The notes under the pieces were generated by a model. That model was not told where the DNA came from, searched no databases, and worked only from the letters and a program-made list of their open reading frames with translations. This document shows positions 6,366 to 44,500 of a stretch of 45,390 nt of DNA, in pieces. How positions within the stretch are numbered: the stretch's first letter is position 1; the number at the start of each line of letters is the position of its first letter. Origin of the DNA: Macrostomum lignano (lineage: Eukaryota); NCBI GenBank assembly GCA_002269645.1, contig NIVC01001906.1, positions 1 through 45,390 on the forward strand. Reading direction: 5' to 3'. The position numbers and the translations under genes are program-made.

Positions 6366-7030
6366 ACTATCTCCCTCTCCCCTATCTCCCTCTCCTATCT
6401 CTCTCTCTCTCCTATCTCCCTCTCCATACATGCGCAACCTCCAAAATTCGATCGGCCGTGCGACTTAGTTTTAACAAAAAATGCGACTTACCTGTGAAAG
6501 AAACCCGAAAGAAAAATTAACGCAATTTTGGGTAAACGGCAGGAGTAACTATGACTGTTTTATAAGGACTAAATGCCTCGTTATCTAATTAGTACTACGT
6601 CTATTCTTTGGGGTGGGCATTTTTGCGACTTACCTTGGTTGGCCGCCAAATCGGTCGGCCGGATCGGCCGACTGTTGCGCATGTATGTCCCTCTCTCCTA
6701 TCTCCCTCTCTCATATATCCCTCTCTCCTATCTCCCTCTCCCCTATCTCCCTCTCTCCTATCTCCCTCTCTCATATATCCCTCTCTCATATATCCCTCTC
6801 TCATATATCCCTCTCTCCTATCTCCCTCTCTCATATCTCCCTCTCCCCTATCTCCCTCTCCCCTATCTCCTCTCCCCTATCTCCCTCTCTCCTATCTCCC
6901 TCTCCCCTATCTCCCTCTCTCCTATCTCCCTCTCTCCTATCTCCCTCTCCTATCTCTCTCTCTCCTATCTCCCTCTCCCTACTTCCCTCTTTTCTATTCC
7001 CCTTTCTTCCCCTATCTCCCTTTTTGATCT
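6366..7030. repeat. 15-bp CT-rich array (CTATCTCCCTCTCTC), interrupted by a MITE
   Basis: Directly visible on both sides of 6425-6687. Confidence 0.93.
6425..6687. mobile_element. hAT-type MITE, 263 bp
   Basis: Perfect 14-bp TIRs CATACATGCGCAAC / GTTGCGCATGTATG; 8-bp TSD TCCCTCTC (6417-6424 and 6688-6695); three internal GCGACTTA(C/G) motifs. Confidence 0.85.
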
Positions 7031-7774
7031 CTCTCTCTCCTCCCTGTCTCGCTATTTTCTGTTCTCCCCCTCTTCTCCCTCAGCCTCCCCATCCTACATA
7101 CAATTAGCCTTTTAATTAGTCTCTAATCCTGAGCTATCATTTAGCAGGTTGCAGATTTTAGTTAAAGATTATTCCAGCCTTTCATTCGGTCTTGAAGTCC
7201 TGAATACAGTCAATAAGTATCTATATATGCATACATAATAAATCAAATATGGTACAGATTAATTATCTAGGCAATCATTTCTATGCCTAAAACATTTTCT
7301 GTATTTACTGGACCGACCTTCCAATTTTGCCTGATGAACACGGGCTTATTACTTCACTTTGCTATGTGCTAATGTTTACCTGCACTTACGCTTAATATGT
7401 ATTTTTTTAGTTAGACAAAAAGATATGTCAGCGCCTAATCTAACATATTTTTAGATGCAATCCTCAAGCGGTAGGAATTAAGGAGACGCACTGTTTATGA
7501 GATATGCATACAATATCCTCCATCTCCATTCTATTTCTTAAGTATAAGTATTCAACCTCCGTGCTGATTGCATTTTTCAAGTCAGTAAAAAATACCAAGT
7601 TGTATTGTACTGAAGTAACCAAAACTTTAAACTTTCTGTGTCTGGGTGAGATATTGGGCAACATTAGTACAGAACTACTGCAAAAAAATCTTCAATGCAC
7701 TGTACTGATACCTGCTACTGCTAATAACTGAAAAAAGTAGTATTTGGTGTTTTTTTGTCTTTGTTTGTTTAGCT

Positions 7775-7932
7775 CAGAGGTCGCAAAGTGTTTTTTAACC
7801 TTAAGGGCCAGATCGCAAACTTAGCTCATGGCAGCGGGAAGAGAGGAGAGAGCAGAGAAGAGACGCAAACCTTGAGCAGACCGGATTTCCAAAGGACCTG
7901 AGGGCCAGATAGAGAGGCTTTGCCTACCTCTG
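7775..7932. mobile_element. hAT (Charlie-like) MITE, 158 bp
   Basis: Ends CAGAGGTCGCAAA / TTTGCCTACCTCTG; degenerate 8-bp TSD GTTTAGCT / ATTTAGTT (6/8 match). Confidence 0.7.
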
Positions 7933-8446
7933 ATTTAGTTCAACCATTCGTAGGAAGATGTTGTCACGTTTTTCGGGATTTGGGATTTTTTGAAAAGCAA
8001 TATATTCAAGTCTCACTCGTCCCCCTCATGTTTAAAACAAGACCTCCAAAATGTAATAGGCTATATAGCCTCATCATTTCCAAAAAAAGATTTTAACCAC
8101 TCGCTTATTAGTATCTGTTTGTCTGATAGTTGTAATGGAGTCATAATGAATTATTCGAAAACTTGTTTGCAAATTAATCTACTTTTGTCTTCCTTTAATC
8201 TCAGTTTTTATCAGCTGGATCTAAGCAGATTCTATTTTGCTTTCTGTACGAATATAACCTAGATGTATTTCGTCTGTGGTCGCTTTAAAGTTTTGTTGCA
8301 ACGAATATTTCTTTCAGTTAGAAAACACGAAGAAATGAGAAATTATGTAAAATAGACACGGTGCACAGTGCGCTGCTGATGTAAAATTCAGACGTTTTCT
8401 TTTTGTCTTTGTTTTTATCTGGGCTATTGAGTGCACCGATTGCTTA

Positions 8447-8880
8447 TTGGACTGGGGAGTGGGGTGGTTATTTATTGGACTAGGGAGTGGGATGGTTGTT
8501 TATTGAACTAGAGAGTGAGGTGGTTGCTTATTGGACTGGGGAGTGAGGTGGTTATTTATTGGACTAGAGAGTGGGGTGGTTGTTTATTGAACTAGAGAGT
8601 GAGGTGGTTTCTTATTGGATTGGGGAGTGGGGTGGTTATTTATTGGACTAGGAAGTGGGGTGGTTGTTTATTGAACTAGAGAGTGAGCTGGTTGCTTATT
8701 GGACTAGGGAGTGGGATGGTTACTTATTGGACTAGGGAGTGGGGTGGTAGTTTATTGGACTAGGGAGTGGGGTGGTATTTTATTGGACTAGGGAGTGGGG
8801 TGGTAGTTTATTGGACTAGGGAGTGGGGTGGTTTCTTATTAGACTAGGGAGTGGGGTGGTTGCTTTTTGGACTAGAGAAG
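8447..8880. repeat. 28-bp minisatellite (TTATTGGACTAGGGAGTGGGGTGGTTGC)
   Basis: About 15 tandem copies visible. Confidence 0.94.
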
Positions 8881-9534
8881 GGGGTAGTTGTCTGACGCCA
8901 GTCATCTTTATTAGCTACGCCGTCATGTTTAAACTTATTTTTAGTCGCCCCGTTTGATGCTACTATCAAAGTTGCAGTAGTGTAACAAGTATATGCGCCT
9001 CTAATTACATGTATAATTTAAATAATTGAGTTACCATTTGCGATTAGCTCGACACTAGATTTTTTTATGACATACAGATTGCTTGTCATTCACTTGAATA
9101 AGCTTTATTATACGAGTACACAATGTAGGTGTAGCGCCTTCAAGCGCGCCTTTCAAAGTGTATCCTTATCTTTTATGCATGTACATGCAGTTCAACTGGA
9201 CGCAAAGCAAAGCTCAAGAAAGGAATGCAGCGCTGAAAAAACACGTGCTTTTACATTGAAGTGTTTTCGACAGTCTATCTGTAAATTTCACTTATTTTAG
9301 CTGACAATGCAAAATTCTCGCACAGCAATGCAGTGGTGGATTATTAGAATATTCATGGCTAGCTTAGGTTTTAAGGTGTCTGCTTAAAGCAGAAAAAGAG
9401 GTGTGCTTGACTACACGGCTGAACTAAAGTGCTCTTTCACGCGTGAAACGAAGTAGTAAATAGCGTATTTATTACTGTACTTTGTCTTAACGGTCTTGTA
9501 CGCCACTGCACTAGGGGAGGCAGTATATAGGACA

Positions 9535-10040
9535 GTAATGAGAGTTGAGACAGCTAGTGTAGTAGAGACCGCGTGATGAGAGTAGAGTAGAGACTGATGA
9601 GAGTAGAGACCGTGAAGAGAGTAAGGAGACAGCAGGTCGGTACGATGAGAGTAGAGAGTATAGAGACCGCGTGATAAGAGTAGAGAACGTGGTGAAAGTA
9701 GAGAGTAGAGACCTGGTGAGAGTAGAGAGTGGAGAAGTGATGAGAGTAGTGAGACAGTGATGAGAGTAGTGAGACAGTGATGAGAGTAGGGAGACAGTGA
9801 TGAGAGTAGGGAGACAGTGATGAGAGTAGTGAGACAGTGATGAGAGTAGGGAGACAGTGATGAGAGTAGTGAGACAGTAATGAGAGTAGTGAGACAGTGA
9901 TGAGAGTAGGGAGACAGTGATGAGAGTAGTGAGACAGTGATGAGAGTAGTGAGACAGTGCTGAGAGTAGTGAGACAGTGCTGAGAGTAGTGAGACAGTGC
10001 TGAGAGTAGTGAGACAGTGATGAGTGTAGTGAGACACTAG
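9535..10040. repeat. 20-bp minisatellite (GAGACAGTGATGAGAGTAGT), degenerate at its left end
   Basis: Directly visible. Confidence 0.93.
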
Positions 10041-10652
10041 GCCAGTGATGATGACCGCAAGCTGGGAGCAGTGTTGACATACATGTTGCTCACACAAGAG
10101 GCCTGACACGGCACTGGGTGCACTGAATCACATTTTGTGCATATTTGCGTAGGCGTTCGCAGTTTGCAGTTCTTGTGGCACCAATGACTGACAGTGGGCG
10201 CATCAGTACATTTTGCTGAACAATTTCGCATGCTGGGGTTGAGCTTGCATTTTCTTTTATCGTTCTAAGAAAGCTGGCTACTCGACCAGCCTGTGGCATA
10301 GCTATAAAACTAATGAGCTCCACCTACACCTTCCGCTTTGCTCTGGAATTGCCTATTGTGGCCGCCCCAGTCTCTCTCTCCCCCTATATCTCTTGCGTTT
10401 CTCGCCCTCTTGGCTCCTGCCTCCCCCCCCACGCAAATTAATTTTGGAGTCTCCGTCTCATTTTATTTGTGCGTCCAATTAGAAAACGCTGCCTCGTCGT
10501 TTTAGGTCGAAATTTATGCATACGAGTATAAATTGTACGAACTGCAGACCAGACGCATATGTTAATGTGGCCCGCGTCTGCTGGCTAAGAGCGAAACACC
10601 GAACTCTTCTAATTCTTCACCGCTGAAGAAACTTACCGTATATATCAAGGTT

Positions 10653-10886
10653 ATGCCAGCCTCATCAACGATGCTGGCAACATTTCTGCCGACTGTGGCA
10701 CTGCTGCTGCTGGCCAACACGCCAGAGACCAGCGGCTTGAACGTCTGGCTGGACAGATCGACTCTGGCTGGGGTGTTCGACTGGATGCAGTTTATCATGT
10801 CTAGGAAGCCGCACAAGGCCAACCGCTGCAGGCCCAGTGAGTGGCGCCGAGCTGCGTGTCTGTCTGTCTGTCTGTGTGTGTGTCTT

Positions 10887-10935
<49 letters not shown>

Positions 10936-10936
10936 G

Positions 10937-10971
<35 letters not shown>

Positions 10972-10972
10972 G

Positions 10973-11037
<65 letters not shown>

Positions 11038-13169
11038 GACTGTCTGTCTGACTGTCTGTCTTTGTGCATGTCTGTCCGACTATCTGTTGGCATTCATCCA
11101 TTAAGATATATCTAGAAAACCTGTCAGCAAGTCAATACACACCCTGATCGCAATTTCGCCCCTCACACTGCCCCGCAGAGCGCTCCAGCCCTTTTCACCG
11201 GGCCCTCACGCAGCCAACATATCCGCTGGTTGAGAACGGCACGGCACTCCTGTATCCAACGGTGGACTTCGTATCGGCCAGGGGCATCGCTCTGGCATTT
11301 AATGTGAATAAAATCAGATTCAATTGGAGCTCGGCAGCGGGTTCCTACGAGGAGAGTCAGGTTAGTGCAGTGCCAGTGATACTAAGACACATAGGACACT
11401 AAGACACTAAAGACGGACGGACAGACAGACAGATAGACAGACAACGGACAGACAGAAAGACACACAGACAGACAGACAGACAGACAGGCAGGCAGATACA
11501 CAGACAGACAGACAGGCAGCCAGACAGACAAACAAACAAACAGATAGACAGACAGACAGACAGACAGACAAACAAACAAAAAGATAGACAGACAGACAGA
11601 CACTAAGACACTAAGACGTTAAGAGAGAAACTGTACATACATATGAATAGATACTACAAAAATGGCAGACGCTTAATCAATGCACACTCGAAACAATTAA
11701 AGCAGAAACACGTTTCTTCATTGTATCTAGCCGGTTATTTTGACAAATTTTCACGCCGTCAGGTTTATTACCGACTAATTAGATTGAAGTCGCACAACAC
11801 AACAGTTCTGGAGACGCCAATGCTAAGCATTACGACACAAGGATACGTACCAGCCATGCAGGGAGCTGGTGAGAGATTGAAAACTTGCATTTCTACTATA
11901 TGAGTAGCCAGCTAAGACATGGGTTTTTTATTAGATTTTTTCCTTGCAGGATTTTTTATCGAACTGCAATGCACCAATCTCATCTCCGGCATCACCGGAT
12001 TTGAGATGCACATGACTTTCTATTGGCCGCTGCTGGCCAATAGAAGAATGATTGTCATGCAGCGGCACTTTAAAAAGGCCTGCTTGTCAATGGGTGAGCG
12101 ATTTCCTTTAATTTCTGTCTAGTTCAGTAGTCTTGATTCTCTTGAGCAATAATCAATTTGTCTCTGATTCAAGCCAACGTATTTGTCCTAAGTCCAGTCA
12201 ATACATGTGGGCAATGACAATGTGTATTGGCTGTTGATTATTTCAAATAAGTCTGACCAATTCCACTGGTCTTTGAGAAAGTCCAATAGTCTCTGAGCAA
12301 GTCCAATAGTCTCTGACCAAATCCAATAGTCTCTGACCAAATCCAGTAGTCTCTGACCAAATCCAATAGTCTCTGACCAAATCCAGTAGTCTCTGAGCAA
12401 GTCCAGTAGTCTCTGAGCAAGTCCAATAGTCTCTGACCAAATCCAGTAGTCTCTGAGCAAGTCCAATAGTCTCTGAGCAAGTCCAATAGTCTCTGACCAA
12501 ATCCAATAGTCTCTGAGCAAATCCAGTAGTCTCTGACCAAATCCATTAGTCTCTGAGCAAGTCCAATAGTCTCTGAGCAAGTCCAATAGTCTCTGAGCAA
12601 GTCCAATAGTCTCTGACCAAGTCTATTAGTCTCTGAGAAAGTCCAATAGTCTCTGACCAAGTCCATTAGTCTCTGAGAAAGTCCAATAGTCTCTGACCAA
12701 ATCCATTAGTCTCTGAGAAAGTCCAGCAGTCTCTGACCAAGTCCATTAGTCTCTGAGAAAGTCCAGCAGTCTCTGACCAAATCCATTAGTCTCTGAGAAA
12801 GTCCAGCAGTCTCTGACCAAATCCATTAGTCTCTGAGAAAGTCCAGCAGTCTCTGACCAAGTCCATTAGTCTCTGAGAAAGTCCAGCAGTCTCTGACCAA
12901 GTCCATTAGTCTCTGAGAAAGTCCAGCAGTCTCTTCCTAACGAGAGCAACAGCACACATTACCGGACCCACCCGCAAAATTTGCATGCAGCGGACAAGCG
13001 CCGTCAAGCTCGCAAATGCCACTGCCGCAGCGAGTGCCGGCGTCAGCGCAAGAAGAATCGCCTCCGGCATCAGAGGCGACGATACCGCAAATGTCAGAAA
13101 CGATGCCAGAAGCGGTGCAGAAAATCGCCAAGCAGCTGCGGCATCAGTAGAAGCCCGTTTTGGCACTAA
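10653..13169 (+). CDS. Secreted WIF-domain protein (WIF1/shifted-like) without EGF repeats
   Basis: Exons 10653-10836, 11179-11360, 11763-11868, 11950-12093 join in frame (phases 1,0,1). Signal peptide, then [11 protein letters not shown]...YPLVENG...[12 protein letters not shown]...[29 protein letters not shown]...[13 protein letters not shown]...HFKKAC, which parallels the WIF domain and its two Cys. The last exon is ambiguous: 12910-13169 (basic, Cys-rich tail; 291 aa) or 12953-13347 (Ala-rich, then hydrophobic; 336 aa). Confidence 0.82.
10857..11080. repeat. (GTCT)n microsatellite in WIF gene intron 1
   Basis: Directly visible. Confidence 0.96.
11380..11625. repeat. (AGAC)n composite microsatellite with ACACTAAG variants in WIF gene intron 2
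   Basis: Directly visible; reverse-complement relative of the 1740-2880 array. Confidence 0.95.
12280..12935. repeat. 20-bp minisatellite (GTCCAATAGTCTCTGAGCAA) in WIF gene intron 4
   Basis: About 32 copies; the right end alternates two variants as a 40-bp dimer. Confidence 0.96.
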
Positions 13170-13641
13170 CGGAACAATGAGAACACTTGGACTCAACATT
13201 CGATTGCAACCCAGACAGTACCTCGTCAACAATCATTTTGTTGTAATACTACTGCTAATAGCAGCAAATATATCAATCTTTGTTGTATTAACTACCAATT
13301 GGGCAAACCAAAATAAACGATTCTATAGATTTGTTGAGTTTTTTTAAATGTAGATTAATTATTTGTAAATAGAGAAAATAGTTGAAAAAACAGTATATTT
13401 GAAATGAAATGTAATAAATGGGTTTCTAATTATAGGACTAATAATAAGTATAGTATAGTTGCTATAATGCCTACGATTTATTAAAATATTTTGCCACAAT
13501 AGAATATTTTATTTAAGAAGCACACGGCTACGTCATCCTACTAATAGTAGACGAAAAGTGTAAAAATGTATGTTTAATAAATTCTACGGAGGAATCTACA
13601 AAATAATGTTTTTAATAGTCACAGAAATCTCGCTAACGCAA

Positions 13642-16397
13642 TCACATCATGCTGTTGCCCTCGAACGGCCTACATCTGGCTGAAGCGAAATAGGCCTTCA
13701 GCCGGGGCCTCGATTCCATCTGCTGTTTAAATCGGGCCAACAACGGATAAGACGAAATATTGGCCTTCCAAGCGTCCGGGAACTGCGACTCTGTGGCGCG
13801 TAGCACGTGCAACAGGCACAGGTCTACGTAGGTTAAACTGTTGCCAAAACAGTACAGCGAATCGGCGCTCTCTGGCTTGTCAACATTGTTATAACGCAGA
13901 GTGGCTTCAAAGTGCGGCAGGAACTTTGGTATACGATTAGCAATGAAATAATCGATATAGGGCTGGGTGAACTCTTGCTGATTATAGTAGGTTTCGTAAT
14001 GATTTTTGCCGTGAAAGGCTAGCCGACCCTCGGCAATGTAGTCCATCACAGTGGTGCACAGCTGGTCAGCTCGGAATTGATCGGCCTCGCTGGCTGGGAA
14101 CAGGCCGAACTGTTTGCCCAGGTAGCGGCACACTGTGCCAGTCTGGCCGAGCTCGAAATCGCCTGCGGCAAGATTTGCAATCCCATAGAGTAAAGTAACT
14201 ATCATGCTTTCTATACTACTCACTTAAGTACATGTAGCCTACCATCAATCAATTTAACCGCCTGTTCATGATTGTCTAAGACTCTACAAATCTGCTTCAG
14301 TATTACTAGCTGCTCATTACTCCTTCCCGTTCTGCTCATGATTCTTTTTATCTGCTCATGATTCCTTCTCATCTGCTCATGATTCCTTCTTATCTAGTCA
14401 TGATTCCTTCTTATCTAGTCATGATTCCTTCTCATCTGCTCACGATTCCTTCTTATCTAGTCATGATTCCTTCTTATCTGCTTGATTCCTTCTCATCTGC
14501 TCATGATTCCTTCTTATCTAGTCATGATTCCTTCTCATCTGCTCATGATTCCTTCTTATCTAATCATGATTCCTTCTTATCTGCTCATTATTCCTTCTTA
14601 TCTGCTTTTGATTCCTTTTCATCTGCTCATGATTCCTTCTTATCCAGTCATGATTCCTTCTCATCTGCTCATGATTCCTTCTTATCTAGTCATGATTTCT
14701 TCTCATCTGCTCATGATTCCTTCTCATCTGCTCATGATTCCTTCTCATCTGCTCATGATTCCTTCTCATCTGCTCATGATTCCTTCTCATCTGCTCATGA
14801 TTCCTTCTCATCTGCTCATTATTCCTTCTGTAGTGATCCGCTAGTTGATGCTAGGCGTCCCACTTTGTCAGCAGTCTCCCTCGCCCTCGCCCTGGGTTGC
14901 TGTCTGCCGCTGGTCAGCTTCCCACCCCCCTTGGCCCGTCTGTTGCTGCCCTTGGCCTGTTCTGCCCTTCTGCGTCTCTGTTCTCGGCCCTCAGCTTCTC
15001 TGCTGTGGGCTGTCTCTGTTTCGTTCCCGTCCCGTTTTCCTCTGTCATGTGAGCAAGTCACATGACAGACTCTGCGTTCTTCGAGTCCTAAAGTGCAGTA
15101 AACATGTTTACTGCACTCGTTGGCCCTGTTTACCGGGAGAATCACGTGCTTTCGGACCCCTCCCTTCTCTAAGGAGAGGAGTGACTCATGTTGCTAAAAA
15201 TAGCAACTGAGTCACAGCCGCGTGTACTCTGGCCGGAGACCTCAAGTGACGTCAGTTCTAAAAATAGAACGAGTCACGAGGTCTTGCGCGCACTGAGACC
15301 CTGCCTCGAGATCTCAAGTGACGTCAGTTCTAAAAATAGAACAAGTCACGAGGTCTTGTGCGTGGGTGTTTCCCGGCTATAAATAGGACCCCTCTCCCCT
15401 TGTTTCCGTCAAGGAATTGATTGGCTTCTTATCTGCGGAGAATTCACTTAGATCCCGTGTGCGTCAGTGTCTAACTAAGTGCCCTTTGCGTACTGAATCC
15501 GTTTGTACTGGTCTGACTGAGACCCCACTAAAGCCCAAGCCTAAGGGAGGCTAACACTGCCTTCCCAGCCACCCCTGAGCCCGGCGGGGATCTGCTGATC
15601 AGGACGCCTTGTTCGTTAATCTGCAAATCTGCACGCTGTGCTGAGTTCGTTGACTTGTTTATTTCGTTCCGACGGGAAGCTCACCTCATCGAAGGCCGAG
15701 ACCTGAAGGAACTGGTGGCAGCACTACCTACGCTACTGAGCGTTGACAGAACTTCCCACTGAAGAGGCTCGAGTCATAAGGTCATCCGCAAGGGCCTAAT
15801 CCGGGAAGCAAACAGCCTGTACTTCACTGGTGGCAGCGGTGGGATTCAAAGACCTACCAGGCCACCCCGAGAAAACCCCATAAGTATTTCACTTCTTATC
15901 TGCTTATGATTCCTTCTCATATAGTCATGATTCCTTCTCATCTAGTCATGATTCCTTCTCATATAGTCATGATTCCTTCTCATCTAGTCATGATTCCTTC
16001 TTATCTGCTCATGATTCCTTCTCATATAGTCATGATTCCTTCTCATCTGCTCATGATTTTTCCCGCACTGCTCATGGGTCATGGCTGTTTCTATTTCTAT
16101 CTATACGTGACTGTGACTGCCTCTGCCAATGGCTGTTCTCACTGCTCAAAATCGTTTCCCTCTGTTTATTCTTTAAAAAAATATTTTACACTTATGCTCT
16201 CACTCACCCTTCTTTATCATAGGCACAGCGAACACGGGCCAACCAACCTTACTTTGGCCTTTAAATTTATCAGTCAGCGGCTGGGGATCGTTCACTTCTT
16301 TGTAGGCGACTCCGGCCTCTTCAAACATGAGGCGAACGAATTCGCCTCGACCGGCTAGAGGCCAGTACCAGAGCTCCCACTCAGCTTCGGATGACAT
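13642..16397 (-). CDS. Glutathione S-transferase (Tyr-type), 2 exons, 236 aa
   Basis: Exons 16397-16208 and 14162-13642; phase-1 intron, total 711 nt. WELWYWPLAGRGEFVRL, FAVPMIKKG-DFELGQT, LTYVDL, RPRLKAYFAS. Confidence 0.93.
14330..16060. repeat. 21-bp minisatellite (ATGATTCCTTCTCATCTGCTC) in the GST intron, split by a solo LTR (14330-14828 and 15892-16060)
   Basis: The same unit resumes in register after the insertion. Confidence 0.95.
14829..15891 (+). mobile_element. Solo LTR, 1063 bp (Ty3/Gypsy-like by 4-bp TSD)
   Basis: TG...CA termini (TGTAGTG / TATTTCA); 4-bp TSD CTTC; TATAAA at 15378; duplicated enhancer-like segment; no coding capacity. Orientation inferred from the TATA box. Confidence 0.8.
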
Positions 16398-16473
16398 GGC
16401 TTAGGCTGCTTGGGTACGCTGGAGCTGAAAAAGCAGGTTAGGAATGCTTTTAGTGTGAGAACATCACTAAAAT

Positions 16474-16892
16474 CAGTCAGTCAGTCAGTCAGTCAGTCAG
16501 TCAGTCAGTCAGTCAGTCAATCAGTCAGTCAGTCAGTCAGTCAGTCAGTCAGTTAGTCAGTCAATCAGTCAGTCAATCAGTCAGTCAGTCAGTCAGTCAG
16601 TCAGTCAGTCAGTCAGTCAGTCAGTCAGTCAGTCAGTCAGTCAGTCAGTCAGTCAGTCAGTCAGTCAGTCAGTCAGTCAGTCAGTCAGTCAGTCAGTCAG
16701 TCAGTCAGTCAATCAGTCAGTCAGTCAGTCAGTCAGTCAGGCAGTCAGTCAGTCAGTCAGTCAGTCAATCAGTCAGTCAGTCAGTCAGTCAGTCAGTCAG
16801 TCAGTCAGTCAGTCAGTCAGTCAGTCAGTCAGTCAGTCAATCAGTCAGTCAGTGAGTCAGTCAGTCAATCAGTCAGTCAGTCAGTCAGTCAA
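16474..16892. repeat. (CAGT)n microsatellite between UBE2U and GST
   Basis: Directly visible. Confidence 0.97.
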
Positions 16893-17135
16893 ATAAATCA
16901 ATTCCATCTGTGTTTGCTAGTAAAAAAAACTGAATTAGATAATATTTATCTTTAAGTTTGGACGGAACGCAATAACAGGAATTAGGAAAAGGAAAAGGTA
17001 ACACTAGTAGAAGTGAAAAAATAACGAAAATAAGTCTGTATCACAGCGCAACTTGTTCTCTGTTAAATAGCCCCCAATTCAGTCGAAAAGAACTTCAAAA
17101 TAGTAAGCAAACGGCAGTTTCTATGTAAGAATTGT

Positions 17136-20100
17136 TCAGGCCTTAATTCTCTCCGCCTCATCGTTGGGCAAATCTCGAGTCCACTGGACCAGGTCCTCAG
17201 CCTCCACTTCGTCTTCTTCATTGTCAAACTGATGCAGCTGAGAACGCTGATGAGGCGGCTGCGGCTGCTTTTTGATGTCGCTCATTAGAGACCGGCTTGT
17301 TGAGACGTCTGCATGATTTTTTTATCAGTGAATGACAATTCAGCAATTTTTGGTAAATCAATATTTCTATATCTAAGTGATTAAGTATCTGAGAAGATAA
17401 CCCAACAACTGAGGATCTGGGAGGCTGGCATAGCAACTGAGGATCTGGGAGGCTGGCATAGCAACTGACACTCTGGGAGGCTGGCCCAGCAACTGACACT
17501 CTGGGAGGCTGGCCCAGCAACTGACACTCTGGGAGGCTGGCCCAGCAACTGAGGATCTGAGAGGCTGGCCCAGCAACTGACACTCTGGGAGGCTGGTGCC
17601 CCAGCAACTGAGGATCTAGGAGGCTGGCCCAGCAACTGAGGATCTGGGAGGCTGGCCCAGCAACTGAGGATCTGGGAGGCTGGTGTCCCAGAAACTGAGG
17701 ATCTGGGAGGCTGGCCCAGCAACTGAGGATCTGGGAGGCTGGCCCAGAAACTGAGGATCTGTGGGGCTGGCCCAGCAACTGAGGATCTGGGAGGCTGGCC
17801 CAGAAACTGAGGATCTGGGAGGCTGGCCCAGCAACTGAGGATCTGGGAGGCTGGCCCAGAAACTGAGGATCTGGGGGGCTGGCCCAGCAACTGAGGATCT
17901 GGGAGGCTGGCCCAGAAACTGAGGATCTGGGGGGCTGGCCCAGCAACTGAGGATCTGGGAGGCTGGCCCAGAAACTGAGGATCTGGGAGGCTGGCCCAGA
18001 AACTGACCCTCTGGGAGGCTGGCCCAGCAACTGAGGATCTGAGAGGCTGGCCCAGCAACTGACACTCTGGGAGGCTGGTGCCCCAGAAACTGAGGATCTG
18101 GGAGGCTGGCCCAGAAACTGAGGATCTGGGAGGCTGGCCCAGAAACTGAGGATCTGGGGGGCTGGCCCAGCAACTGAGGATCTGGGAGGCTGGCCCAGAA
18201 ACTGAGGATCTGGGGGGCTGGCCCAGAAACTGAGGATCTGGGGGGCTGGTCCAGCAATTAATGAGATGAGATGAATCGAAGATGATAAAATATGTTTTTG
18301 CTAGAAATTCGAGAATCAGGATATTTACGAGCCCTGTGTAAACAGCGAGGTAAAAAAGATAAAAGTTCAGAAAAAACACTCACTGGAGGCGTGCCTCTGG
18401 GCCAAATAGATACGCCGCATCTGATCCAACCGCTCAAGATTTGATTCCAACTGTTTCTGCTGCTGTTTCTGCTTTGGCTGGCCAGAATTTCCGTATTTTA
18501 AACGACGGTGACTGAAGTTAATTGGCCAGCAAAAATTAAGATAGTTTCAAAAGTTATTAAGCTACTAATCTAGTAGGTAGTAGCTAGCCTGCACACTATT
18601 ACCTTTCAATCTTAGCTGACAAAGTGTCGGAGTGCCATATGGAAGCTGAAAAAAATTAAATGAGAAACATAATTAAACTTAATCTTAAATTCTGAATCCT
18701 ATAGACAAATACGTCGTATATATCCTGGTCCAACCACATAGACAAATGTACATTCGGCCCTCAAGTCCCATGCTAAAATGTACACTCTTTTCCTACCAAG
18801 CCTCAGACAAATGTACACCCTACCCTCAAGTCCCATATACACATGTACACTCTGGCCCCCAAGCCCCATAGATAAATGTACATTCTGCCCACCAAGCTCG
18901 ATCGAAAAATGTACCCTAAATGTCCCCAACCCCTATAAAACCGACCAGGATTGAACGGTTCTCGATCGACAGTCTTAGAAGTAGCCAATTTACTCCAATC
19001 GGCGTGGTACGTTTCAAAGCTAATCTTTCTTTGGGATGGTTTCTGCGGCTTAGGCGGCGGTCGGTTCAAATAGTCCAAATCGTATTCGATCTCTACGGGT
19101 TGACGCACACCGCCAGACGCATCGGGATTCTCGTCGTCGCCCGATGGAGAGAATGGTCGCAGCTTGTCTGGGGAGTCTGGAAGATTTAATTTGAAAATAA
19201 AAAAACTGAAATATACTTGTTAAACAAAGGTGTAACTAATTTAAGCATGGATTCATGTAAAGTCAGGTTTGAGTCAGGTTTCCTCAGATAATATTAAGAA
19301 ACAATATCCGATAGTGGTGGTGGTAAATAGCATGATTTCGAATAAAAATCACTTATCTAAGAAGTCATGTTAGTAATTTACTCTGACATTAATAGATTTC
19401 TTATAGTATTACTAATAAGGTAGATATGATTCCACAGTAATTAATAAAAGCTTCTATTAATGATAATCGGCGCACTTCCGCGAATTCAATAGCTTTTATT
19501 TTCATCTGTACTTAATTAACTGTTTTGTCAAAGTGACCTTTTCCATAGACAATGTACACTCTTGCCCTGCCCCTGCCAAGCCCCATATACAAATGTACAC
19601 TCTACCTTCAAGCCCTATAGACAAATGTACACTCTGCCCACAAAGCCCCATAGACAAATGTACACTCTGGCCCCCTAAGCGCCATAGTCCCATAGGCCCG
19701 GATGGAATGGGGTGGGTGAGTTTATTATCGATTAGCTGGTAGTCCACCAACCCGAGTTTCCTAACCTCCCGTCAACTTATATCTATCGCTGCTGGTCATG
19801 TACAGTCACAGGGGGTGGGTGGGTGTTTTTTTATCGATTTTATTATCGGCCTTAAACCTCTTTCCTACCCCGCCAACTTCACTTAATCGCTGCTGGCTAG
19901 ATGGGGGTGGGTGACTGTTTTATCGATCTGGTTGGGCCGTCAACCAATCCTTCCTCTACCCTAACTATATTTATCTTATCGCGAAAGTGCGAATGGGTTC
20001 AAGCAAAGTTAACGCGACCTTAATATTACCAACCAGCTTTTCATTTTATCTCGGTCTCAATGTATGTATGCGGGACTTTAAATATTGTGCTAATTTGGCT

Positions 20101-21902: not shown

Positions 21903-22329
21903 TGTTGCCTGCTTTTTTTGCCTCGTATTGTAGCTGAAATGAAACGACCGATCGAAAATGCACTGTCAAGACTGATCAACAAAAGGTGATTCATATTAGC
22001 GTATGCCTTTTTACTATCTGACATAGCAACTAGCTGGACAGATATCCAGGTGCTTTACTGTGTAAAAACGAAGCATATAGTATGAGGCCAAGTAGTTAAA
22101 TAAGACAGAGATAGCTGCTTTGTGTGCTCTCGTAAGCCTTGTACAAACAAAACTATTGTGTATACAGCATATATCGGACCGAGCACAATCTACCCTGCGA
22201 TAGAGAAAACGTATAGACAACGTATGCAGACTGCATCGAGACCTTTGCATACGATAGCATAGGCAGCTCGCAGCACCTAGCTATAGTTCGTGCTAATCTT
22301 TTTGCTAGACTTCTTACTTCTAATTCCAT

Positions 22330-23500
22330 ATCTACCGACCTGAATCTTTATCTCTACTGACCTGCGCCTCTGTCTCTACTGACCTGCATCTCTATCTCTT
22401 CTGACCTGCATTTCTATCTATTCTGACCTGAATCTCTATCTCTACTGACCTGCGCCTCTCTCTCTACTGACCTGCATATCTGTCTCTACTGACCTGCGCC
22501 TTTCTCTCTACTGACCTGCGCCTCAATCTCTACTGACCTGCGCCTTTCTCTCTACTGACCTGCGCCTCAATCTCTACTGACCTGCGCCTTTCTCTCTACT
22601 GACCTGCGCCTCTATCTCTACTGACCTGCGCCTCTATCTCTACTGACCTGCGCCTCTATCTCTACTGACCTGCGCCTTTCTCTCTACTGACCTGCGCCTC
22701 TATCTCTACTGACCTGCGCCTTTCTCTCTACTGACCTGCGCCTCTATCTCTACTGACCTGCGCCTCTATCTCTACTGACCTGCATCTCTGTCTCTACTGA
22801 CCTGCATCTCTGTCTCTACTGACCTGCGCCTTTCTCTCTACTGACCTGCGCCTCTATCTCTACTGACCTGCGCCTTTCTCTCTACTGACCTGCGCCTCTA
22901 TCTCTACTGACCTGCGCCTTTCTCTCTACTGACCTGCGCCTCTATCTCTACTGACCTGCGCCTTTCTCTCTACTGACCTGCGCCTCTATCTCTACTGACC
23001 TGCGCCTTTCTCTCTACTGACCTGCGCCTCTATCTCTACTGACCTGCGCCTTTCTCTCTACTGACCTGCGCCTCTATCTCTACTGACCTGCGCCTTTCTC
23101 TCTACTGACCTGCGCCTCTATCTCTACTGACCTGCGCCTCTATCTCTACTGACCTGCGCCTTTCTCTCTACTGACCTGCGCCTCTATCTCTACTGACCTG
23201 CATCTCTATCTCTACTGACCTGCATCTCTATCTCTTCTGACCTGCGCCTCTGTCTCTACTGACCTGCATCTCTATCTCTTCTGACCTGCCTCTCTATCTC
23301 TACTGACCTGCATCTCTATCTCTACTGACCTGCATCTCTATCTCTTTTGACCTGCATCTCTATCTCTTCTGACCTGCGCCTCTGTCTCTACTGACCTGCA
23401 TCTCTATCTCTTCTGACCTGCCTCTCTATCTCTACTGACCTGCATCTCTATCTCTACTGACCTGCATCTCTATCTCTACTGACCTGCATCTCTATCTACT
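22330..23500. repeat. 22-bp minisatellite (CTACTGACCTGCGCCTCTATCT)
   Basis: About 53 copies; homogeneous alternating centre, diverged edges. Confidence 0.97.
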
Positions 23501-24479: not shown

Positions 24480-24795
24480 AAATCGATCAGATCAAAGTTT
24501 AGGAATCGATCAGATCAAAGTTTTAAAATCGATCAGATCAAAGTTTTAAAATCGATCAGATCAAAGTTTAAGAAATCGATCTGATCAAAGTTTTAAAATC
24601 GATCAGATCAAAATTTTAAAATCGATCAGATCAAAGTTAAGAAATCGGTCAGATCAGTTTAAGAAATCGGTCAGATCAAAGTTAAGAAATCGATCAGATC
24701 AAAGTTGAAGAATCGATTAGATCAAAGTTTAAGAAATCGATTAGATCAAAGTTGAAGAATCGATCGGATCAAAGTTGAAGAATCGATCGGATTAA
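24480..24795. repeat. ~21-22-bp minisatellite (AAATCGATCAGATCAAAGTTTT)
   Basis: Directly visible. Confidence 0.92.
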
Positions 24796-24903
24796 AATTC
24801 AAACATTTCTTTATTGACTACTTCAAGTAGCCAAATGAAAAGTGCAATAAAACTGCTAAAACTTCTAACGATAAAACTAATCTCATCGCTCTACCCCAAG
24901 AAA

Positions 24904-30210: not shown

Positions 30211-30934
30211 GTGTTTTTTTTTATGAACAGATTGCAAGACTGTTAGACTCGGGAGTCAATGACCGAAATTGTGAGTTATTTATCAGCAGTCGCCGCGCTC
30301 TCCCAATGACAGACTCGATATTTAATAACGTCGAGTTAGATGCGCACGCGCACACTAGCATTCACGCCAACCCGCCCCCCCCCCCCATTCCAGGTCCCAC
30401 TTCCGCGACTTGAGCTCGTACCGCACCGGCGTACAGCGGGAAGGAGCAAGGAAGGGATAGTTTTTCTTTCCACATACAACTAATCGTACGGGGAACAAGG
30501 AAGGAGAGGATGGCGAAACTGATATACAGTTCCTTCTGCTCTATCCCCATATACCACATCTCCGCACCGCGCTTCCCTTCGCAGAGACCTCCCTGGCCCT
30601 ACTCTCATTCCTGTCGTTTTGATCAGTCAAGTAGTCCTTCTAACTCCTTCTAGCTACTAAAGAGAAACTAATCACAATCCTCTGTATCTCTAGAAACTGT
30701 GAGCCAAACAGGTGCAAGTCTAATATTAACCAATGAGGTCCAACCGACTTAACAACATGTACATTTAAAAGTAATCCAATGCGGAAGATGCTGTCAAGAA
30801 TCTTAATCTGTTTCCTAATCTGTTGCCTAGTTTCAAGGGCTAAAGCTCCTGTACCCAGGAGCTTAAACACAATATGGTGTTTGACAAATAAAGTTGACAG
30901 ATGTTTGTCAATAGACAAACGTAGCATAGCCTAG

Positions 30935-31044
30935 AAATGAGGGGGTAGAAGTGTCGAACAGGAGTCAATTGAAAGAAGATTATAGAGAGGAGAGAAGTGA
31001 CATAAACCTTGAGCAGCGGGACGGCCGGAGTTTGCCGACCCCTG
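30935..31044. mobile_element. Fragment (right end) of a Charlie-like hAT element
   Basis: Ends in TTTGCCGACCCCTG and shares AAACCTTGAGCAG (31004-31016) with the 7775-7932 MITE (7867-7879). Left end not found. Confidence 0.45.
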
Positions 31045-31712
31045 GGGGGTGTTTCATAGATTTGAAAAGCTACAAGTGAATAGTGAAAAGTTACAAGCTG
31101 ACTAAGTAGTGAACTAGATATCTATGGGCCAAACATCAAGTCCGTCCCAGGCGCAGCCACAGCTGACTCCCGTTGGACCCTGGATTATGATCTATTTCTG
31201 TATAGAGGAAAGACAATATTTATCAATATTTAAATATAATCTTTGACATAGAGTCTATCTTACACGTGTGGCCCACTAGCAAGCGTAAGAATGCCTCTCA
31301 CGGTTGAAAACAAAACGCCATACTGCGTCTGCTTAACGAGAAAAAGGCCGAGTTGTTTGGAGAATTTTCCTGTATAATTACGAAGTAATTGAATCAATTC
31401 GATCCTTAAACTGAAAGATTATTCGCGGTTTAAAAATTCTGGGTCTCTTTGCCAATGCAACGTGGCCAATAGCTTCGTCCAAAGAGTCCGAATCAGAATC
31501 GAACATGTTGCCATGCGAAGCGAAATCTGATAGTTACAAGTTTGACAAATCTCGCGGGACTACTCAAGCTTGTCGAAAATCAAACGCTGCTCACTCTTCA
31601 AGAAGCGATGTCCATGAAACAAACCGCTTGTAACTAGCACTTGTCACTACTCACTGCTCACTTGTCGAACTTGTACGAGTAACTCTGACAAGTGGTCTAT
31701 GAAACACCCCCC
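31044..31712. mobile_element. Harbinger/PIF-like deletion derivative
   Basis: 17-bp TIR GGGGGGTGTTTCATAGA / TCTATGAAACACCCCCC. The minus-strand mini-ORF 31506-31378 (..AKRPRIFKPRIIF..) recalls Harbinger transposase N-termini. No clean 3-bp TSD. Confidence 0.55.
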
Positions 31713-32220
31713 CGTGGAATAGATGTATCACTAATGAGGCTATCATATACATAGAAATGGATCGTTTTATTTATCTATGACTCTGTGCATTTGAGTTCCA
31801 AATTCGATCCTAACTGGACCCATAGACTATACGCTCGTAACTCTTGCCAAATTAATTCTATATTTGGCATCCTGAATCAGAATTCAGGTTGCCAACTGGC
31901 ATCAATGAAAAAGTACCAAATAAAATAAAATATACCAACATCTTTAGCCTATCCTTTATACTAGTGAGCCTCTCTGGCAAAAAAAGATTGCAAAAGTCTT
32001 CTTAAAAAAGTTAAAATCCTAAAAATTCCACAAATTAAAAAACTATAGAGATTTCAAGTGAAATATGAATTACAGGAAATCAACTGTGTTGCTGAAATTT
32101 GCTTACTTTTGCCAAAGTTGAATCCACGCTTTAATATCAGATTCTGCCACTGTTGGCCATAGACAGTTGCTGTTCAGTCCAAGGGCTAAGAGGGGGGGAG
32201 GTCCCCACTCCCACCCTCAA

Positions 32221-32363
32221 TTACCCCAGCTAATGCTGGCACCCATTTTACAGCTGGGTGGACTGAACCAATGCAGATTTAAGTGTCTTGCTCAAGGATA
32301 CAAATTGTTTAAAGTGGGTCAAGAATCGAACCATCGGCCTTTTAGTCGTGAGTTCGAGCTCTA
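32221..32363 (-). mobile_element. tRNA-derived SINE, 5'-truncated copy
   Basis: Similar along its length to 36648-36806 (CCCCAGCTAAT...TCTTGCTCAAGGA.ACAAATTGTT...AATCGAACCA...TTAGTCGTGAGT). Confidence 0.7.
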
Positions 32364-32899
32364 GAGGGTCTAGCCTTTAGGCTTACAACTCCCTAATCCT
32401 CTCTCCAGATAAGTTTATGATATGAGAACTCCTTGAGTCAGCTTAACCGTTCTTATGGAACAGAATCTCAAGAAAGAAATAAGAAATGAAGATAGAGAAA
32501 GAGAAATCGGAGAAACCAAAAAAGCATATATAGGGAGAAGGTTTATCAGCTTAAATCTATAGGAATACCAGCTATATAAAATACATACGAGTATATACCA
32601 ACTTGTCCTACTGGTGGCTAAGAAACTCTTGCAAGCAAGCTTATATCGCCACTTATCCGTGAGCTCTACTCCAACCAGACCGGCTTAAATGTGAAGCATG
32701 CAGGCGGGCAGCGGAGAAAAAAGGGAGGAAAAAAGCAGAACTAGTGGCGAGAATTGGCCTGCCTTGACCATACAGCAGAGAGGCGGAGCGTTTCTAATTA
32801 AAGTGAAACTATCAAGGGAAATTGTTGATTGAATAGGAATTAAGCTCAATTATACTTACATTATATTGCAATTTCTTGCGAATTATGACCCCTAGAAAT

Positions 32900-33535
32900 C
32901 CAGATTTTAAACCCCTGGGAATCCACATTGTAAATTCCTGGGAATCCACATTGTAAACCCCTGGGAATCCAGATTAAACCCTGGAATTCCAGATTAACCC
33001 CTGGGAATCGACATTAAACCCTGAGAATCCACATTAACCCCTCGGAATCCAGATTAACCCCTGGGAATCCACATTGTAAACCCCTGGGAATCAACATTAA
33101 ACCCTGGAATTCCAGATTAACCCCTGGGAATCAACATTAAACCCTGGAATTCCAGATTAACCCCTGGGAATGAACATTAAACCCTGGAATTCCAGATTAA
33201 CCCCTGGGAATCAACATTAAACCCTGGGAATCAACATTAAACCCTGGAATTCCAGATTAACCCCTGGGAATCAACATTAAACCCTGGGAATCAACATTAA
33301 ACCCTGGGAATCCACATTAAGCCTTGGGGATTCACATTAACCCCTGGGAATCCACATTGTAAACCCCTGGGAATCAACAGTAAACCCTGGGAATCCACAT
33401 TAACCCCTGGGGATTCAGATTAACCCCTGGGAATCCAGATTAACCCCTGGGAATCCAGATTAACCCCTGGGAATCCACATTAAGCCCTGGAAATTCACAT
33501 TAATCCCTGGGAATCCAGATTCTAAACCCCTGGAA
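32900..33535. repeat. ~20-23-bp minisatellite (AACCCCTGGGAATCCAGATT)
   Basis: Directly visible. Confidence 0.94.
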
Positions 33536-34059
33536 AAGGGGGCCCAGTTCAAAAACATGCTAAGTCCTAGCTAGGAAAAAAGATAAAAGAAAATAACACA
33601 AAACAAAAGAAGTTCTTAATCAAAATACCACATTGGCTCGAGCCAGCACGCCACAGAGTTGGCGGTTTAATTCAAAACTGCACCGTTTTTTTATTTACTC
33701 GCTAGATGGTTAGATGCACAGCAAACAAGACATACTACTCATAAGTAGGTTTAAGCGTTGAGAAAAAGAACGAAGAACACGAACATGAAAAAGATAAGAA
33801 AAAAGGGGTTTTAAAAACAGTCAATTTTAGCAATTTGCTATAGCGAGCATGATGTATTAAAAACTTACACACTAGTAATGTTTTCATATTTTATTAGAAA
33901 ATTTAGACATAAAAAACACACTGAAAAAGGGCCTGTTGAAATTCTGCTGTCGGAATGGCATTATTTTTTATTTGCATTTTTTACTACTACAAGTGAGAGC
34001 TGACGAATTGTGTAAGTGATTGTAAATTAAATAATAAATGGCAGTTTACTAGCGCCCAT

Positions 34060-40717
<6,658 letters not shown>

Positions 40718-41503
40718 GTCACGTCACTGTGATACTTATAATTGTAAATGCAATGAGATACAGGATCGAATGCTACTATTTTGGCAAAATTACAAGAGCT
40801 GACAGTGCCAGAATGTAGCTATGCGCACTTGATTAACCGGATAGAAAAAAATTCACGGGCAATGCTTGCGTTTAAAAAACGATATAGTTTATTGCACTTT
40901 TTACTGACAAGGTTAAAATAAATAACAAAAAAATAACATAACTCTATGCTAGGCAAAATATTATTAACAAATGTGTTGATTATTTTGCCATGCTTTACTT
41001 AAATATAGACAAGAATTTAGTTTCTGTTGTTATAAAAACAGAGTAAAAATTCAAACAAAAGATTGCTAAACATTAAAAAACTGTGGCCTTTTTCAGGTTT
41101 TAATATCAAAATATGAATTTAGAAGTTTCTTATCATTATAAAAAGGTCATTTTACATTTTGTTTCATTGCACCATATGTTAGCTCAAATTTGTGCAACGA
41201 CTCTTATATCAACGCTGTGTATATTTAAAAAACTTAGACCTAGGCCTAGTAAAAAAATCGTCAGATCTGCTGAAATATGTCAATCTTTGTAACTAGGCTC
41301 CCTACTCGAAATTTAATTAAATCCATTTGCATTGGTCTAATTCATGTTAAGTAAATTTAAAGACTAATAATTTCATTGCCTCAGCCCTTTTTCTCTAGTT
41401 TAGTAAGAAATTTGATTAGACCTAGCTTAGCCTAAGCCAAGCCAACCTTGACGCAATTTTTTTTTAATAGGTCTTTTTACTTTAGCTTAGGCTTAATTTA
41501 AAC
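40718..41503. promoter_or_regulatory. Probable bidirectional promoter region between RUVBL2 (-) and PAXIP1 (+)
   Basis: 786 bp between two divergent inferred start codons; no core promoter element specifically identified. Confidence 0.55.
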
Positions 41504-44500
41504 ATGATGAATTCTACTCCAGCTAATAAGCTATTTGCTGGTATGAGATATTATGTCATTTCATGTTCAGACTCAGATAAGTTGGTAAGTTTTGCATTCC
41601 TGTTGTCTTTTTGTTGATTATTAGACTTTTAAATTTTTTTGGTCATGTACAAAATTCGTCAAATTGTTTTGTTGGCTTAAGTTGCTGTCTGTTTAAGTAA
41701 TTATTAGGCCTGATATAGCTTTAGACAAAAAAGATTTTAAAATTAAAGAAACTTATATTAAAAAAGTATAAAAAATGAGTTTCTTTTTCTTGACCCAGCC
41801 TAGTCCCATGTCAGGGTGAAATTTATCCCAAAACAAATAATGCATTCTATGTATGAGAAAAATAAAGAATTAAATGCTCTTGCCTATAAAAGTTTATTTT
41901 TTGGTCCTAAGGAAGCTTTGTAAATAAATATTAGTGCTAATATTATCCCATTGTTAAACATCTTTAAATAGCTACAATAGTCAATATGCACTTTTAGAAA
42001 AAAATCCACTGGCACTTTTCTGTGTACCTTTCTTGGTCAAAATTTTTTGTGTCTACTTGTTGTATGAAATATACCCTGTTTCTTGACAAATATTTATTAT
42101 TACTTATTAAAATTTATGTGATTTAAAATTAAATAGACATTAAATAATTCTGTTAGGCCCTAGTGTTAGCATTTAAGAAAATTAATCTACTTATCTAATT
42201 TTTAGCATATATTTATATCATAATTATTTTGCATCAAAACTTTATCATATTTATAAGTTATTAAAACCCATGAATTTTAAACCTGCTAAATTCCAATTCA
42301 TCTTTTCTCTTTTTTCTCCTTTCTTATCTTCCATTTTTTGCCTTTTTTATCTTTTTCATCTTATCTATTCTTCTCTCTTATCTTCTTGTCCCTCTTCTTT
42401 CTCTTTCTTTCTTCTCTTCTCTCTGGTCTCAGTTCTCTTATCTCTCATCTTATCATGCTTGGGTGCAACCTTGGGATTCACCTGGCCATTTCTATTGGCA
42501 ACATATACATGTAAGTCACTATTGGACAGAATAGTAGTCACGTGACTGCTCTTAGCCAATAGCAACTTACATGTCTGTGTTGCCAATAGAAATGGCTGGG
42601 TGATTCCCAAAGTTGCGCATGTATGCATCTTATCTTTTCTTTTTCCTTTCCTTTATTATTTTCTCTTAAATCTCTCAAGTCTTCTTTATTTTCTTTCCTT
42701 TCTTCTCTCTTCTCTCTCTTTTCTCTCTTTTCTCTTTCTCTTCTCTTTACTTTCTCCCATCCCTATTCTCCTTTTTCCTCTTCCTTTCTCCCTTTCCCCT
42801 TTCTCTCTCTTTGTCTCTCTTCTCTGCTCTCACAAATTTCTTTTCTACCCTCTCTCCTTTTGTCTTTATAATCTCTTTTCACTGTTCTTTTTACTCTTGC
42901 ATCTCTTGTTTTTATTTTTACTTGTCTATTAATTTACTTATATGTTGGTATTAACCTTTATTTTTCTAATACTTTTTAAATAAGCATCACTATTACATTT
43001 CTTGTCTATTTACTCCTGTCTTTGTTCTCTTCTTTTTCCTTTTTTCTTTTCTTTTCTCTTCTCTTCCTTCTCTATTGTTCTTTTTTAGCTCTTTAGCTCT
43101 TTCTCTATTCACTTTTCTTTTCTCTCTCTACTCTCCTCTCTTGTCTCCTTTATCTCTTATCTTTAATTTTTTTATTTAGTTTTATCTCTTTTCTATATAA
43201 CCTTATCTCTTCTCTCTTCTCTTTCTCTCTCATTTTCCCTTTCTCTTCTTTTCTCTTTCCTCTCTGATCTCCTATCTCATCACTCCTCTCTTAGTCCTAT
43301 CTTATCTTTCCTTTCTTCTTTCTGCTTACTTATCTCCATTTTCTAATCTCTACTTCTTCTTTTCTTATCTCTCCTCTCCTCTTCTTCTTATCTCTATTCT
43401 CTTTTCTCACTTCTCACACTCCTCTTTTCTCTTACCCCTTATTCTCTCCTTTCTCTTATTTTTCTTTCCCCCTTTTCCCACATACATGCACAACTTTGGG
43501 AATCACCTGGCCGTTTCTATTGGCAACACATACATGTAAGTCGCTATTGGCTGAGAGCAGTCACGTGACTACTATTCTGTCCAATAGCGACTTACATGTG
43601 TGTGTTGCCAATAGAAACGGCCGAGTGAATCCCAAGGTTGCGCCCAAGCATGTTTTCCCACCTCACTCTCTTTGTCGTCACCCCTTATCCCTTGTTTCTC
43701 TTTTTTATCTTCTATCTTTTCTCTTATCCTTTCTCTCGCCTCTCCTCTGAAGCTAGAGCTAAGCAAGATTTTTCTGGCATTTGATGTTAAAGTCTGCCAA
43801 TCACTGTTTCAAAAGCCAGTGTGTAGAACATAGTACTCTCATGATTGTTCTTATGCTTTGATCATGTAATCTTTCTAGCTAATTTGCAGCCCTGAGAAAA
43901 AGTTGCATATCTTCAGATCTATTGTAGTAGTCTACATCAGTCTAACAACCAAGACAATGCACATTTCTTAAGAGGCCATTTAAATTTTAGAGTATCTTTG
44001 GGTAAAACTTGATGTTGAAATTTCCATGGTGTCACTTGTATTGCATTGCTTTTTATATAAATCTTTCATTTTTACAAACTATGTTGGATTGCCTTGATTT
44101 GCCAATTGCTATTCACTGTTAAATTGCTGCAGTCTGCTAATATAGAAAGCAGTGGTTACAATAAAGCCTCAAAGCTTCCTAAAGCCTCAATCTGAGCACA
44201 ATATACTTATGATTACTAAAGCACTCCTAGCTTTCATAAAGATGTGCCATGTGTTATCCCATCCTAAATTTCATTCCTCATTCATAAGCCACAATCATAC
44301 AACCTCTAAAACTCTTTGATGGGAGAACCAATAGAGTATCCCAAGAATCTATCTCCATTTGTCTGGAGCTCACATTGCTGGAAACTTTCTTGGTGACAAA
44401 TGCATTAATAATGCGGCTGGCAAAACTGAGAGGGTAACCATTGGATCTGAAGATTTTAGTCAGGGCAGAAACCTCTTGGTGGAGTAAACTCCAAGAAAAT

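Follow-up and report, generated by a model that had tools for sequence, protein, structure and literature searches.

How a DNA transposon comes to lie repeatedly in polypyrimidine DNA is the question raised by contig NIVC01001906.1 of the flatworm Macrostomum lignano (assembly GCA_002269645.1), the whole of which (45,390 bp) is the window analysed here. It contains three short insertions that are non-autonomous, non-coding transposons with terminal inverted repeats (TIRs), i.e. [quoted passage not shown] Copy 1 (263 bp) lies beyond the 3' end of a galactosyltransferase gene, and copies 2 and 3 (172 bp each) lie in the first intron of a gene encoding a BRCT-domain protein (Table 1). Their siting in CT-rich DNA may well reflect a regional bias of insertion, and their ends lean slightly towards the P superfamily of transposons.

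Structure of the three elements

All three elements have in common a 14-bp tip, CATACATGC(G/A)CAAC. Allowing two mismatches or fewer, its form CATACATGCGCAAC is matched four times in the window (0.21 matches expected), and all four matches are element ends, two belonging to copy 1 and one to each of copies 2 and 3. The 8-bp duplications are exact at every copy; the chance that left and right 8-mers agree, estimated from random pairs in the 150-nt flanks, is 0.008, 0.003 and 0.001 for copies 1, 2 and 3, respectively, and the joint chance of three exact duplications is about 4e-8 with low-complexity flanks allowed for. Deletion of copy 1 together with one TSD brings the 15-bp minisatellite TCCTATCTCCCTCTC back in phase, and the reconstructed site therefore fits a true insertion.

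The 172-bp form has two distinct tips in both of its copies (end A, CATACATGCRCAAC; end B, CATGCTTGGGYGCAAC), which differ slightly from one another and terminate arms some 80 nt long with 82-87% complementarity. Apart from its tips, it is a near-perfect hairpin (DNA folding energies of -57 and -66 kcal/mol, with z-scores of -13 and -16). When compared by sensitive blastn, the 263-bp and 172-bp forms are alike only in the tip and in a subterminal 9-mer. Copy 1 has stop codons in all six frames, and a search of 5.8 billion proteins with the one frame of the 172-bp form that is free of stops (57 codons) gave no relative. Each 172-bp element also carries four CCAAT/ATTGG boxes placed symmetrically about a CACGTG palindrome at the centre (AGTCACGTGACT); together these motifs look promoter-like, and they lie within an intron.

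The 9-mer is GTAAGTCGC, which reads GCGACTTAC on the plus strand, and all four exact copies of GCGACTTAC in the window fall within the elements. At the right end of copy 1 and in copy 3, GTAAGTCGC has the same orientation and begins 55-56 nt from tip A; its distance from tip B is 58 nt, and overall it is found 55-58 nt inside all five ends that bear it in this orientation. A common tip and a motif at equal spacing from it, in otherwise unrelated sequence, are the signature of the cis-acting sites of a single transposase, with the 9-mer as a candidate binding site. Its placing may correspond to that of the internal THAP site of P elements, tens of nucleotides from the tip, but hAT subterminal repeats would look alike. 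A transposase supplied in trans would bind the 9-mer, pair the tips, excise the element and reinsert it across an 8-bp staggered cut. The first-pass annotation, a reading of the letters of the window, had described the three insertions with their common terminus, the exact 8-bp duplication of each, the internal GCGACTTAC motif and the mobilisation of at least two non-autonomous forms; these descriptions hold, and the identical tips and unrelated interiors of the two forms presumably reflect the work of one transposase.

Sensitive blastn within the window recovers the three copies only, and a scan for TIRs with TSDs across the window and the M. lignano loci compared with it recovers only copy 1, the paralogues of copy 1 and one hAT element described below. 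Pattern scans of viral, metagenome and genome contig collections (with the 172-bp core, or with the tip followed at 35-45 nt by the 9-mer) gave no matches, and a literature search for the tip sequences gave nothing. The family has very probably escaped description so far because the published M. lignano repeat library dropped elements shorter than 200 bp and all unclassified ones (PMC5730564).

Paralogous loci and the age of the family

The M. lignano genome consists of 13% tandem repeats and 3% DNA transposons, and includes 180 Mb of blocks duplicated at 95% identity or higher (PMC5730564). Two collinear paralogous regions were compared with the window: one in NIVC01001145.1 (loci L006 and L010), whose identity to the window in the vicinity of copies 2 and 3 is 99.7%, and one in NIVC01000051.1 (loci L005 and L009), about 98% identical. 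Copy 1 is 100% identical at L009 22100-22362 and L010 20733-20995, which was rejected as a sign of selection because identity is just as high in the flanks. Both paralogues have copy 2, with 171/172 identical positions in L006 (the terminal base differs) and 97.7% identity in L005. Copy 3 is present in L006 at 99.4% identity; the L005 locus stops about 300 bp short of its site.

Copies 2 and 3 are 8% divergent, with 14 differences of which 13 are transitions and 7 are of the CpG type, a pattern consistent with old, decaying copies. Copies are shared by paralogues that are 98-99.7% identical and copies 2 and 3 are 8% apart; therefore, the family, including these insertions, predates the recent duplication. 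The possibility that copies 2 and 3 are the two ends of one composite element was rejected, each having its own, different TSD. Thus far, two independent sites have been seen for the 172-bp form and one for the 263-bp form. As a separate observation, copy 3 retains seven CpG dinucleotides and copy 2 retains two, and 7/14 differences between them are CpG-to-TpG/CpA changes, which hints at CpG hypermutability, possibly via methylation, in this flatworm lineage.

NIVC01000051.1 contains three further insertions that have no counterpart in the window, each with an exact 8-bp TSD and a cleanly empty counterpart site in the window, and these serve as controls. The 591-bp MITE and the 1283-bp non-coding element are each found in one paralogue only, both within intron 1 of the BRCT gene, the former at an AT-rich island between the sites of copies 2 and 3. 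The 2925-bp hAT transposon is missing from both the window and L006, and its insertion is younger than the genome duplication. It has many asymmetric subterminal GCGGGCCGCA repeats, and adjacent open reading frames (429 and 178 aa) that encode a Spin-doc zinc finger, a DUF4371 domain and a hAT dimerisation domain and are split by either an intron or a frameshift. Elements with 8-bp TSDs, a true hAT among them, have thus been active of late in M. lignano, but the CATAC tip is absent from all of these.

P or hAT

The assignment of the family to hAT, as first proposed from the 8-bp TSDs and the CA-starting tips, is not established. TSDs of 8 bp fit both superfamilies, being typical of P elements (whose TSDs measure 7-8 bp) and P-derived MITEs as well (PMC1562414, PMC7776569), and because P transposases also make them they are not diagnostic of hAT. 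The terminal motif of hAT elements is 5'-YARNG-3' (PMC3014272), from which the tips CATAC (end A) and CATGC (end B) depart by a T at the third base and a C at the fifth. The tip of the 591-bp MITE does not conform either, and the ends of the local hAT, CAGGG and CATGG, illustrate that single deviations from YARNG occur. The hAT target preference is nTnnnnAn (PMC10368747), with whose fixed positions TCCCTCTC agrees at 0/2, CATCTTAT at 1/2 and TTTTCCCA at 1/2, so that no TSD fits, but this is a weak criterion, the TSD of the genuine hAT (CCCTAGAC) also agreeing at 1/2.

The closest TIR is that of the zebrafish P element Pdre2, which has a 13-bp TIR, CATACCTGTCAAC, and an 8-bp TSD (PMC10983969). 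The MITE tip CATACATGCGCAAC agrees with it at 11/13 positions (edit distance 3: two substitutions and one indel), a match that a 14-mer starting with CA would attain by chance with a probability of about 0.001. The resemblance to P, drawn from one comparator and 14 nt, is suggestive. A literature search for a P-type transposase (THAP, RNase H and GTP-binding parts) in this genome came back empty. The TIR of the local hAT, CAGGGGTCCCCAACCT, is equal to the MITE tip at only 8-9/14 positions, and the hAT of L005 was rejected as the autonomous partner, its TIRs and subterminal repeats being different.

In favour of hAT, the local hAT has CATGG at one of its ends and CCAACCT, which end B also contains, at both. 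In addition, MITEs of the hAT superfamily are commoner than those of P. The subterminal 9-mer has precedents in both superfamilies: hAT transposases bind short asymmetric subterminal repeats, such as those of Hermes (PMC10368747), and in Drosophila the site bound by the P transposase is 10 bp long and lies 9 or 21 bp within a 31-bp TIR (PMC7776569). Roughly, we place P (THAP9-type) and hAT nearly level, each somewhat short of an even chance and with a slight lean to P, and leave a small share to all other superfamilies.

Siting in CT-rich tracts

The first-pass annotation had placed every copy in a polypyrimidine tract, and this was upheld: the DNA that holds the copies is 83-92% pyrimidine, pyrimidines make up 92%, 86% and 89% of the 50-nt flanks on each side of copies 1, 2 and 3, respectively, and of the other positions in the window only 1.7-3.2% show as strong a purine/pyrimidine skew. 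A distance of 855 bp separates copies 2 and 3 within one tract.

There is about an even chance that this siting reflects a regional bias for accessible, nucleosome-poor DNA near the ends of genes, and not sequence-specific recognition of polypyrimidine. Such a bias is known for cut-and-paste elements of both the P and the hAT superfamilies; P elements favour promoters or the 5' regions of genes as well as replication origins, and hop locally (PMC7776569). The gene ends in question would be the first intron of the BRCT gene and the 3' flank of the glycosyltransferase gene, and the concentration in CT tracts would be heightened both by local hopping (from either of copies 2 and 3 to the other) and by the persistence of insertions where low-complexity DNA is selectively neutral. 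Four independent insertions from three families are found in intron 1 of the BRCT gene, which is therefore a regional hotspot, whatever its sequence.

Several points weigh against a purely regional bias. The flanking skew is 0.86-0.92 for the CATAC family versus 0.72 and 0.57 for the 591-bp/1283-bp pair of controls and 0.51 for the hAT, and siting in CT-rich sequence is found for 3/3 members of the CATAC family versus 0/3 controls (one-sided p = 0.05); this fine-scale contrast favours some family-specific preference. Copy 1 is in a separate CT-rich minisatellite, 36 kb away from the hotspot. The accessibility of the CT tracts is assumed. All of the readable paralogous sites are filled, none providing an empty site for any of the three copies, and no autonomous partner was found in the window and the paralogous loci, the superfamily being called from 14 nt and the length of the TSD.

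A near-random insertion without bias, in which copies survive only in neutral low-complexity DNA and are surrounded by CT-rich sequence by chance, is a possible account of the siting, though a doubtful one. The window is gene-dense, its 45 kb holding at least seven genes, and tandem repeats make up 37% of it; the insertions are old enough to have given selection time to filter them, and copies 2 and 3 are not clearly independent. All of these fit such an account, but tandem and low-complexity DNA of other composition is about ten times commoner in the window than CT tracts and holds zero copies, and most introns and intergenic DNA should tolerate a 172-bp insertion equally well.

That the MITEs are steered into CT-rich DNA by a hAT-like transposase, as the first-pass annotation had proposed, through recognition of this DNA or of its unusual structure, we consider unlikely. 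The strength of the proposal is that CT tracts take up about 3% of the window and yet hold 3/3 copies (p of about 1e-3 if two of the events are independent, and about 3e-5 if three are), inserted in both orientations, and that the three other 8-bp-TSD insertions of the paralogous region lie outside CT-rich sequence; furthermore, the genome contains hAT elements that were active in recent times. However, there are just three sites, two of them 855 bp apart in one tract, and the CT-tract feature was picked after the data were seen, so that the hypothesis is post hoc; with only two or three independent events, CT-tract targeting is an unproven hypothesis. About 45 kb of unrelated M. lignano sequence contains no copies, as targeting would predict, but has almost no CT tracts and hence no power. 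The hAT part of the proposal is further opposed by the departures of the tips and TSDs from YARNG and nTnnnnAn (PMC3014272, PMC10368747) and by the different TIRs of the sole hAT element recovered, and the literature searched contained no CT-tract-specific DNA transposon.

A P-superfamily (THAP9-type) system in this free-living flatworm, whose transposase or host factor directs integration into polypurine/polypyrimidine tracts, is a long shot; if true, it would be the first cut-and-paste family of this kind and a possible safe-harbour-like tool for integration. That the CT-rich repeats formed or grew around elements already in place, as has been proposed for the TA microsatellites beside the TAFTA and SaTar Mutator-like elements (MULEs) (PMC5907723), is hardly credible: with copy 1 and one TSD taken out, the minisatellite is exactly in phase again, each copy has an exact TSD with a sequence of its own, and the 1.4-kb tract around copies 2 and 3 consists of CT-rich DNA that is degenerate and not a repeat of the TSD.

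Genes and other features of the window

Exons were found in the window for an OCIA-domain gene, the GT31 galactosyltransferase, a pi-like glutathione S-transferase (GST), a UBC-domain gene, a hemerythrin-domain gene, RUVBL2 and the BRCT gene; Rfam and tRNA scans of the window gave no matches. The CT-rich 15-bp minisatellite begins about 320 bp 3' of the stop codon of the GT31 galactosyltransferase gene, and copy 1 starts 383 bp downstream of the same stop codon. The coordinates of the elements and of the features around them are given in Table 1.

Table 1. Elements with 8-bp duplications, their sites and associated features (window positions unless a paralogous locus is named)
Feature	Position	Strand	Remarks
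Copy 1, 263-bp MITE	6425..6687	.	Perfect 14-bp TIRs: CATACATGCGCAAC left, GTTGCGCATGTATG right (tip A twice)
Copy 2, 172-bp hairpin-like MITE	42454..42625	+	Left tip B CATGCTTGGGTGCAAC, right tip A (reverse complement CATACATGCGCAAC)
Copy 3, 172-bp MITE	43481..43652	-	Orientation opposite to copy 2; 92% identical to copy 2
TSD of copy 1, TCCCTCTC	6417..6424 and 6688-6695	.	Exact, 8 bp
TSD of copy 2, CATCTTAT	42446-42453 and 42626-42633		Exact, 8 bp
TSD of copy 3, TTTTCCCA	43473-43480 and 43653-43660		Exact, 8 bp
Subterminal 9-mer GTAAGTCGC (GCGACTTAC on + strand)	6625..6633	-	55 nt from tip A of copy 1
Further copies of the 9-mer	6460-6468 (8/9 bases), 6483-6491, 42511-42519, 42562-42570, 43536-43544, 43587-43595		
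CT-rich 15-bp minisatellite (TATCTCCCTCTCTCC)n	6360..7060	+	Split by copy 1
Degenerate polypyrimidine tract, 1.4 kb	42330..43760	+	In intron 1 of the BRCT gene; contains copies 2 and 3
BRCT-domain gene, 1642 aa	Start codon 41505, exon 1 donor 41586	+	Intron 1 hosts copies 2 and 3
591-bp MITE	L005 208-798; empty site ACTATTAC at window 42989-42996		TSD GTAATAGT; imperfect TIRs of ~30 bp, CCCTATAGGAAAAAGTTGTAAAACCGCGGACG
1283-bp non-coding element	L005 1806-3088; empty site ACTTTTAG at window 41990-41997		Ends AGGCACTTCAGTGAG and TAGGGACTTCAGTGAG; TSD CTAAAAGT
2925-bp hAT transposon	L005 6935-9859; window site is a 22-bp minisatellite, 38213-38519		TIR CAGGGGTCCCCAACCT, other end CATGGGTCCCCAACCT; TSD CCCTAGAC

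The GST gene spans 2753 bp in the window (13645-16397, minus strand), 4522 bp in L009 (10001-14522) and 1329 bp in L010 (10001-11329). Its single intron differs about threefold in size between the paralogues, and in the window much of it is taken up by tandem repeats, namely a minisatellite of 21 bp and an array of (TCAG)n. In the galactosyltransferase gene, too, minisatellites of 31 bp and 20 bp fill the introns (4042-4714 and 5140-5742). The 237-aa GST and its 352-aa UBC-domain neighbour fall into one protein cluster at 90% identity together with an 814-aa UniRef entry named 'glutathione transferase', which suggests that the adjacent GST and UBC genes are fused into one model by some annotations. 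A 264-aa WIF-domain gene is annotated immediately after the GST gene in L010 (11803-14671, NIVC01001145.1), and none is listed for L009 (NIVC01000051.1).

Significance and comparison with known systems

With these elements, M. lignano gains a MITE family so far undescribed. A strong bias for CT tracts, if true, would mean that a DNA transposon chooses its targets by composition or structure, which is rare, and would bear on how insertions build up in the minisatellite-rich introns of this genome. A transposase partner of the P type, if true, would extend active-looking P-element biology to flatworms and might provide a native vector for transgenesis of M. lignano, which is, to our knowledge, the one flatworm in which transgenesis works. 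In this species Minos failed and integration is random (PMC5730564).

Among P-superfamily relatives, Pdre2 of zebrafish combines an 8-bp TSD with a short, 13-bp TIR, similar to the 14-bp MITE tip, and the P-MITEs of Anopheles and BuT5 of Drosophila have unrelated interiors bounded by the ends of a master element, as do the two forms found here (PMC1562414, PMC3698922). Unlike the 172-bp form, however, the Anopheles P-MITEs and BuT5 are not hairpins. The target consensus of the Drosophila P element is GC-rich and palindromic, not CT-rich. MITEs of the hAT superfamily (Mar of Drosophila and those of Anolis) have 8-bp TSDs and short TIRs, as here.

Small non-autonomous elements lying mostly inside simple repeats are known among the MULE-type MITEs of plants (SaTar, TAFTA and Micron), which have long TIRs (PMC5907723). 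They differ from the present family in that their targets are mostly (TA)n, and in that their TSDs are 9-10 bp long, or absent in the targeted copies (PMC5907723). SaTar and TAFTA also form modular arrays joined end to end, whereas here the 8-bp TSDs are exact and copies 2 and 3 are set 855 bp apart in a CT-rich tract. Kibi and Koshi of fish, reportedly described by Kojima and Fujiwara in 2004, are said to be non-long-terminal-repeat retrotransposons specific for (TC)n and (TTC)n. As with the three M. lignano copies, their sites are pyrimidine-rich, Kibi and Koshi being restricted to simple repeats of this composition, but they employ a sequence-specific endonuclease and lack TIRs, and their mechanism is unrelated.

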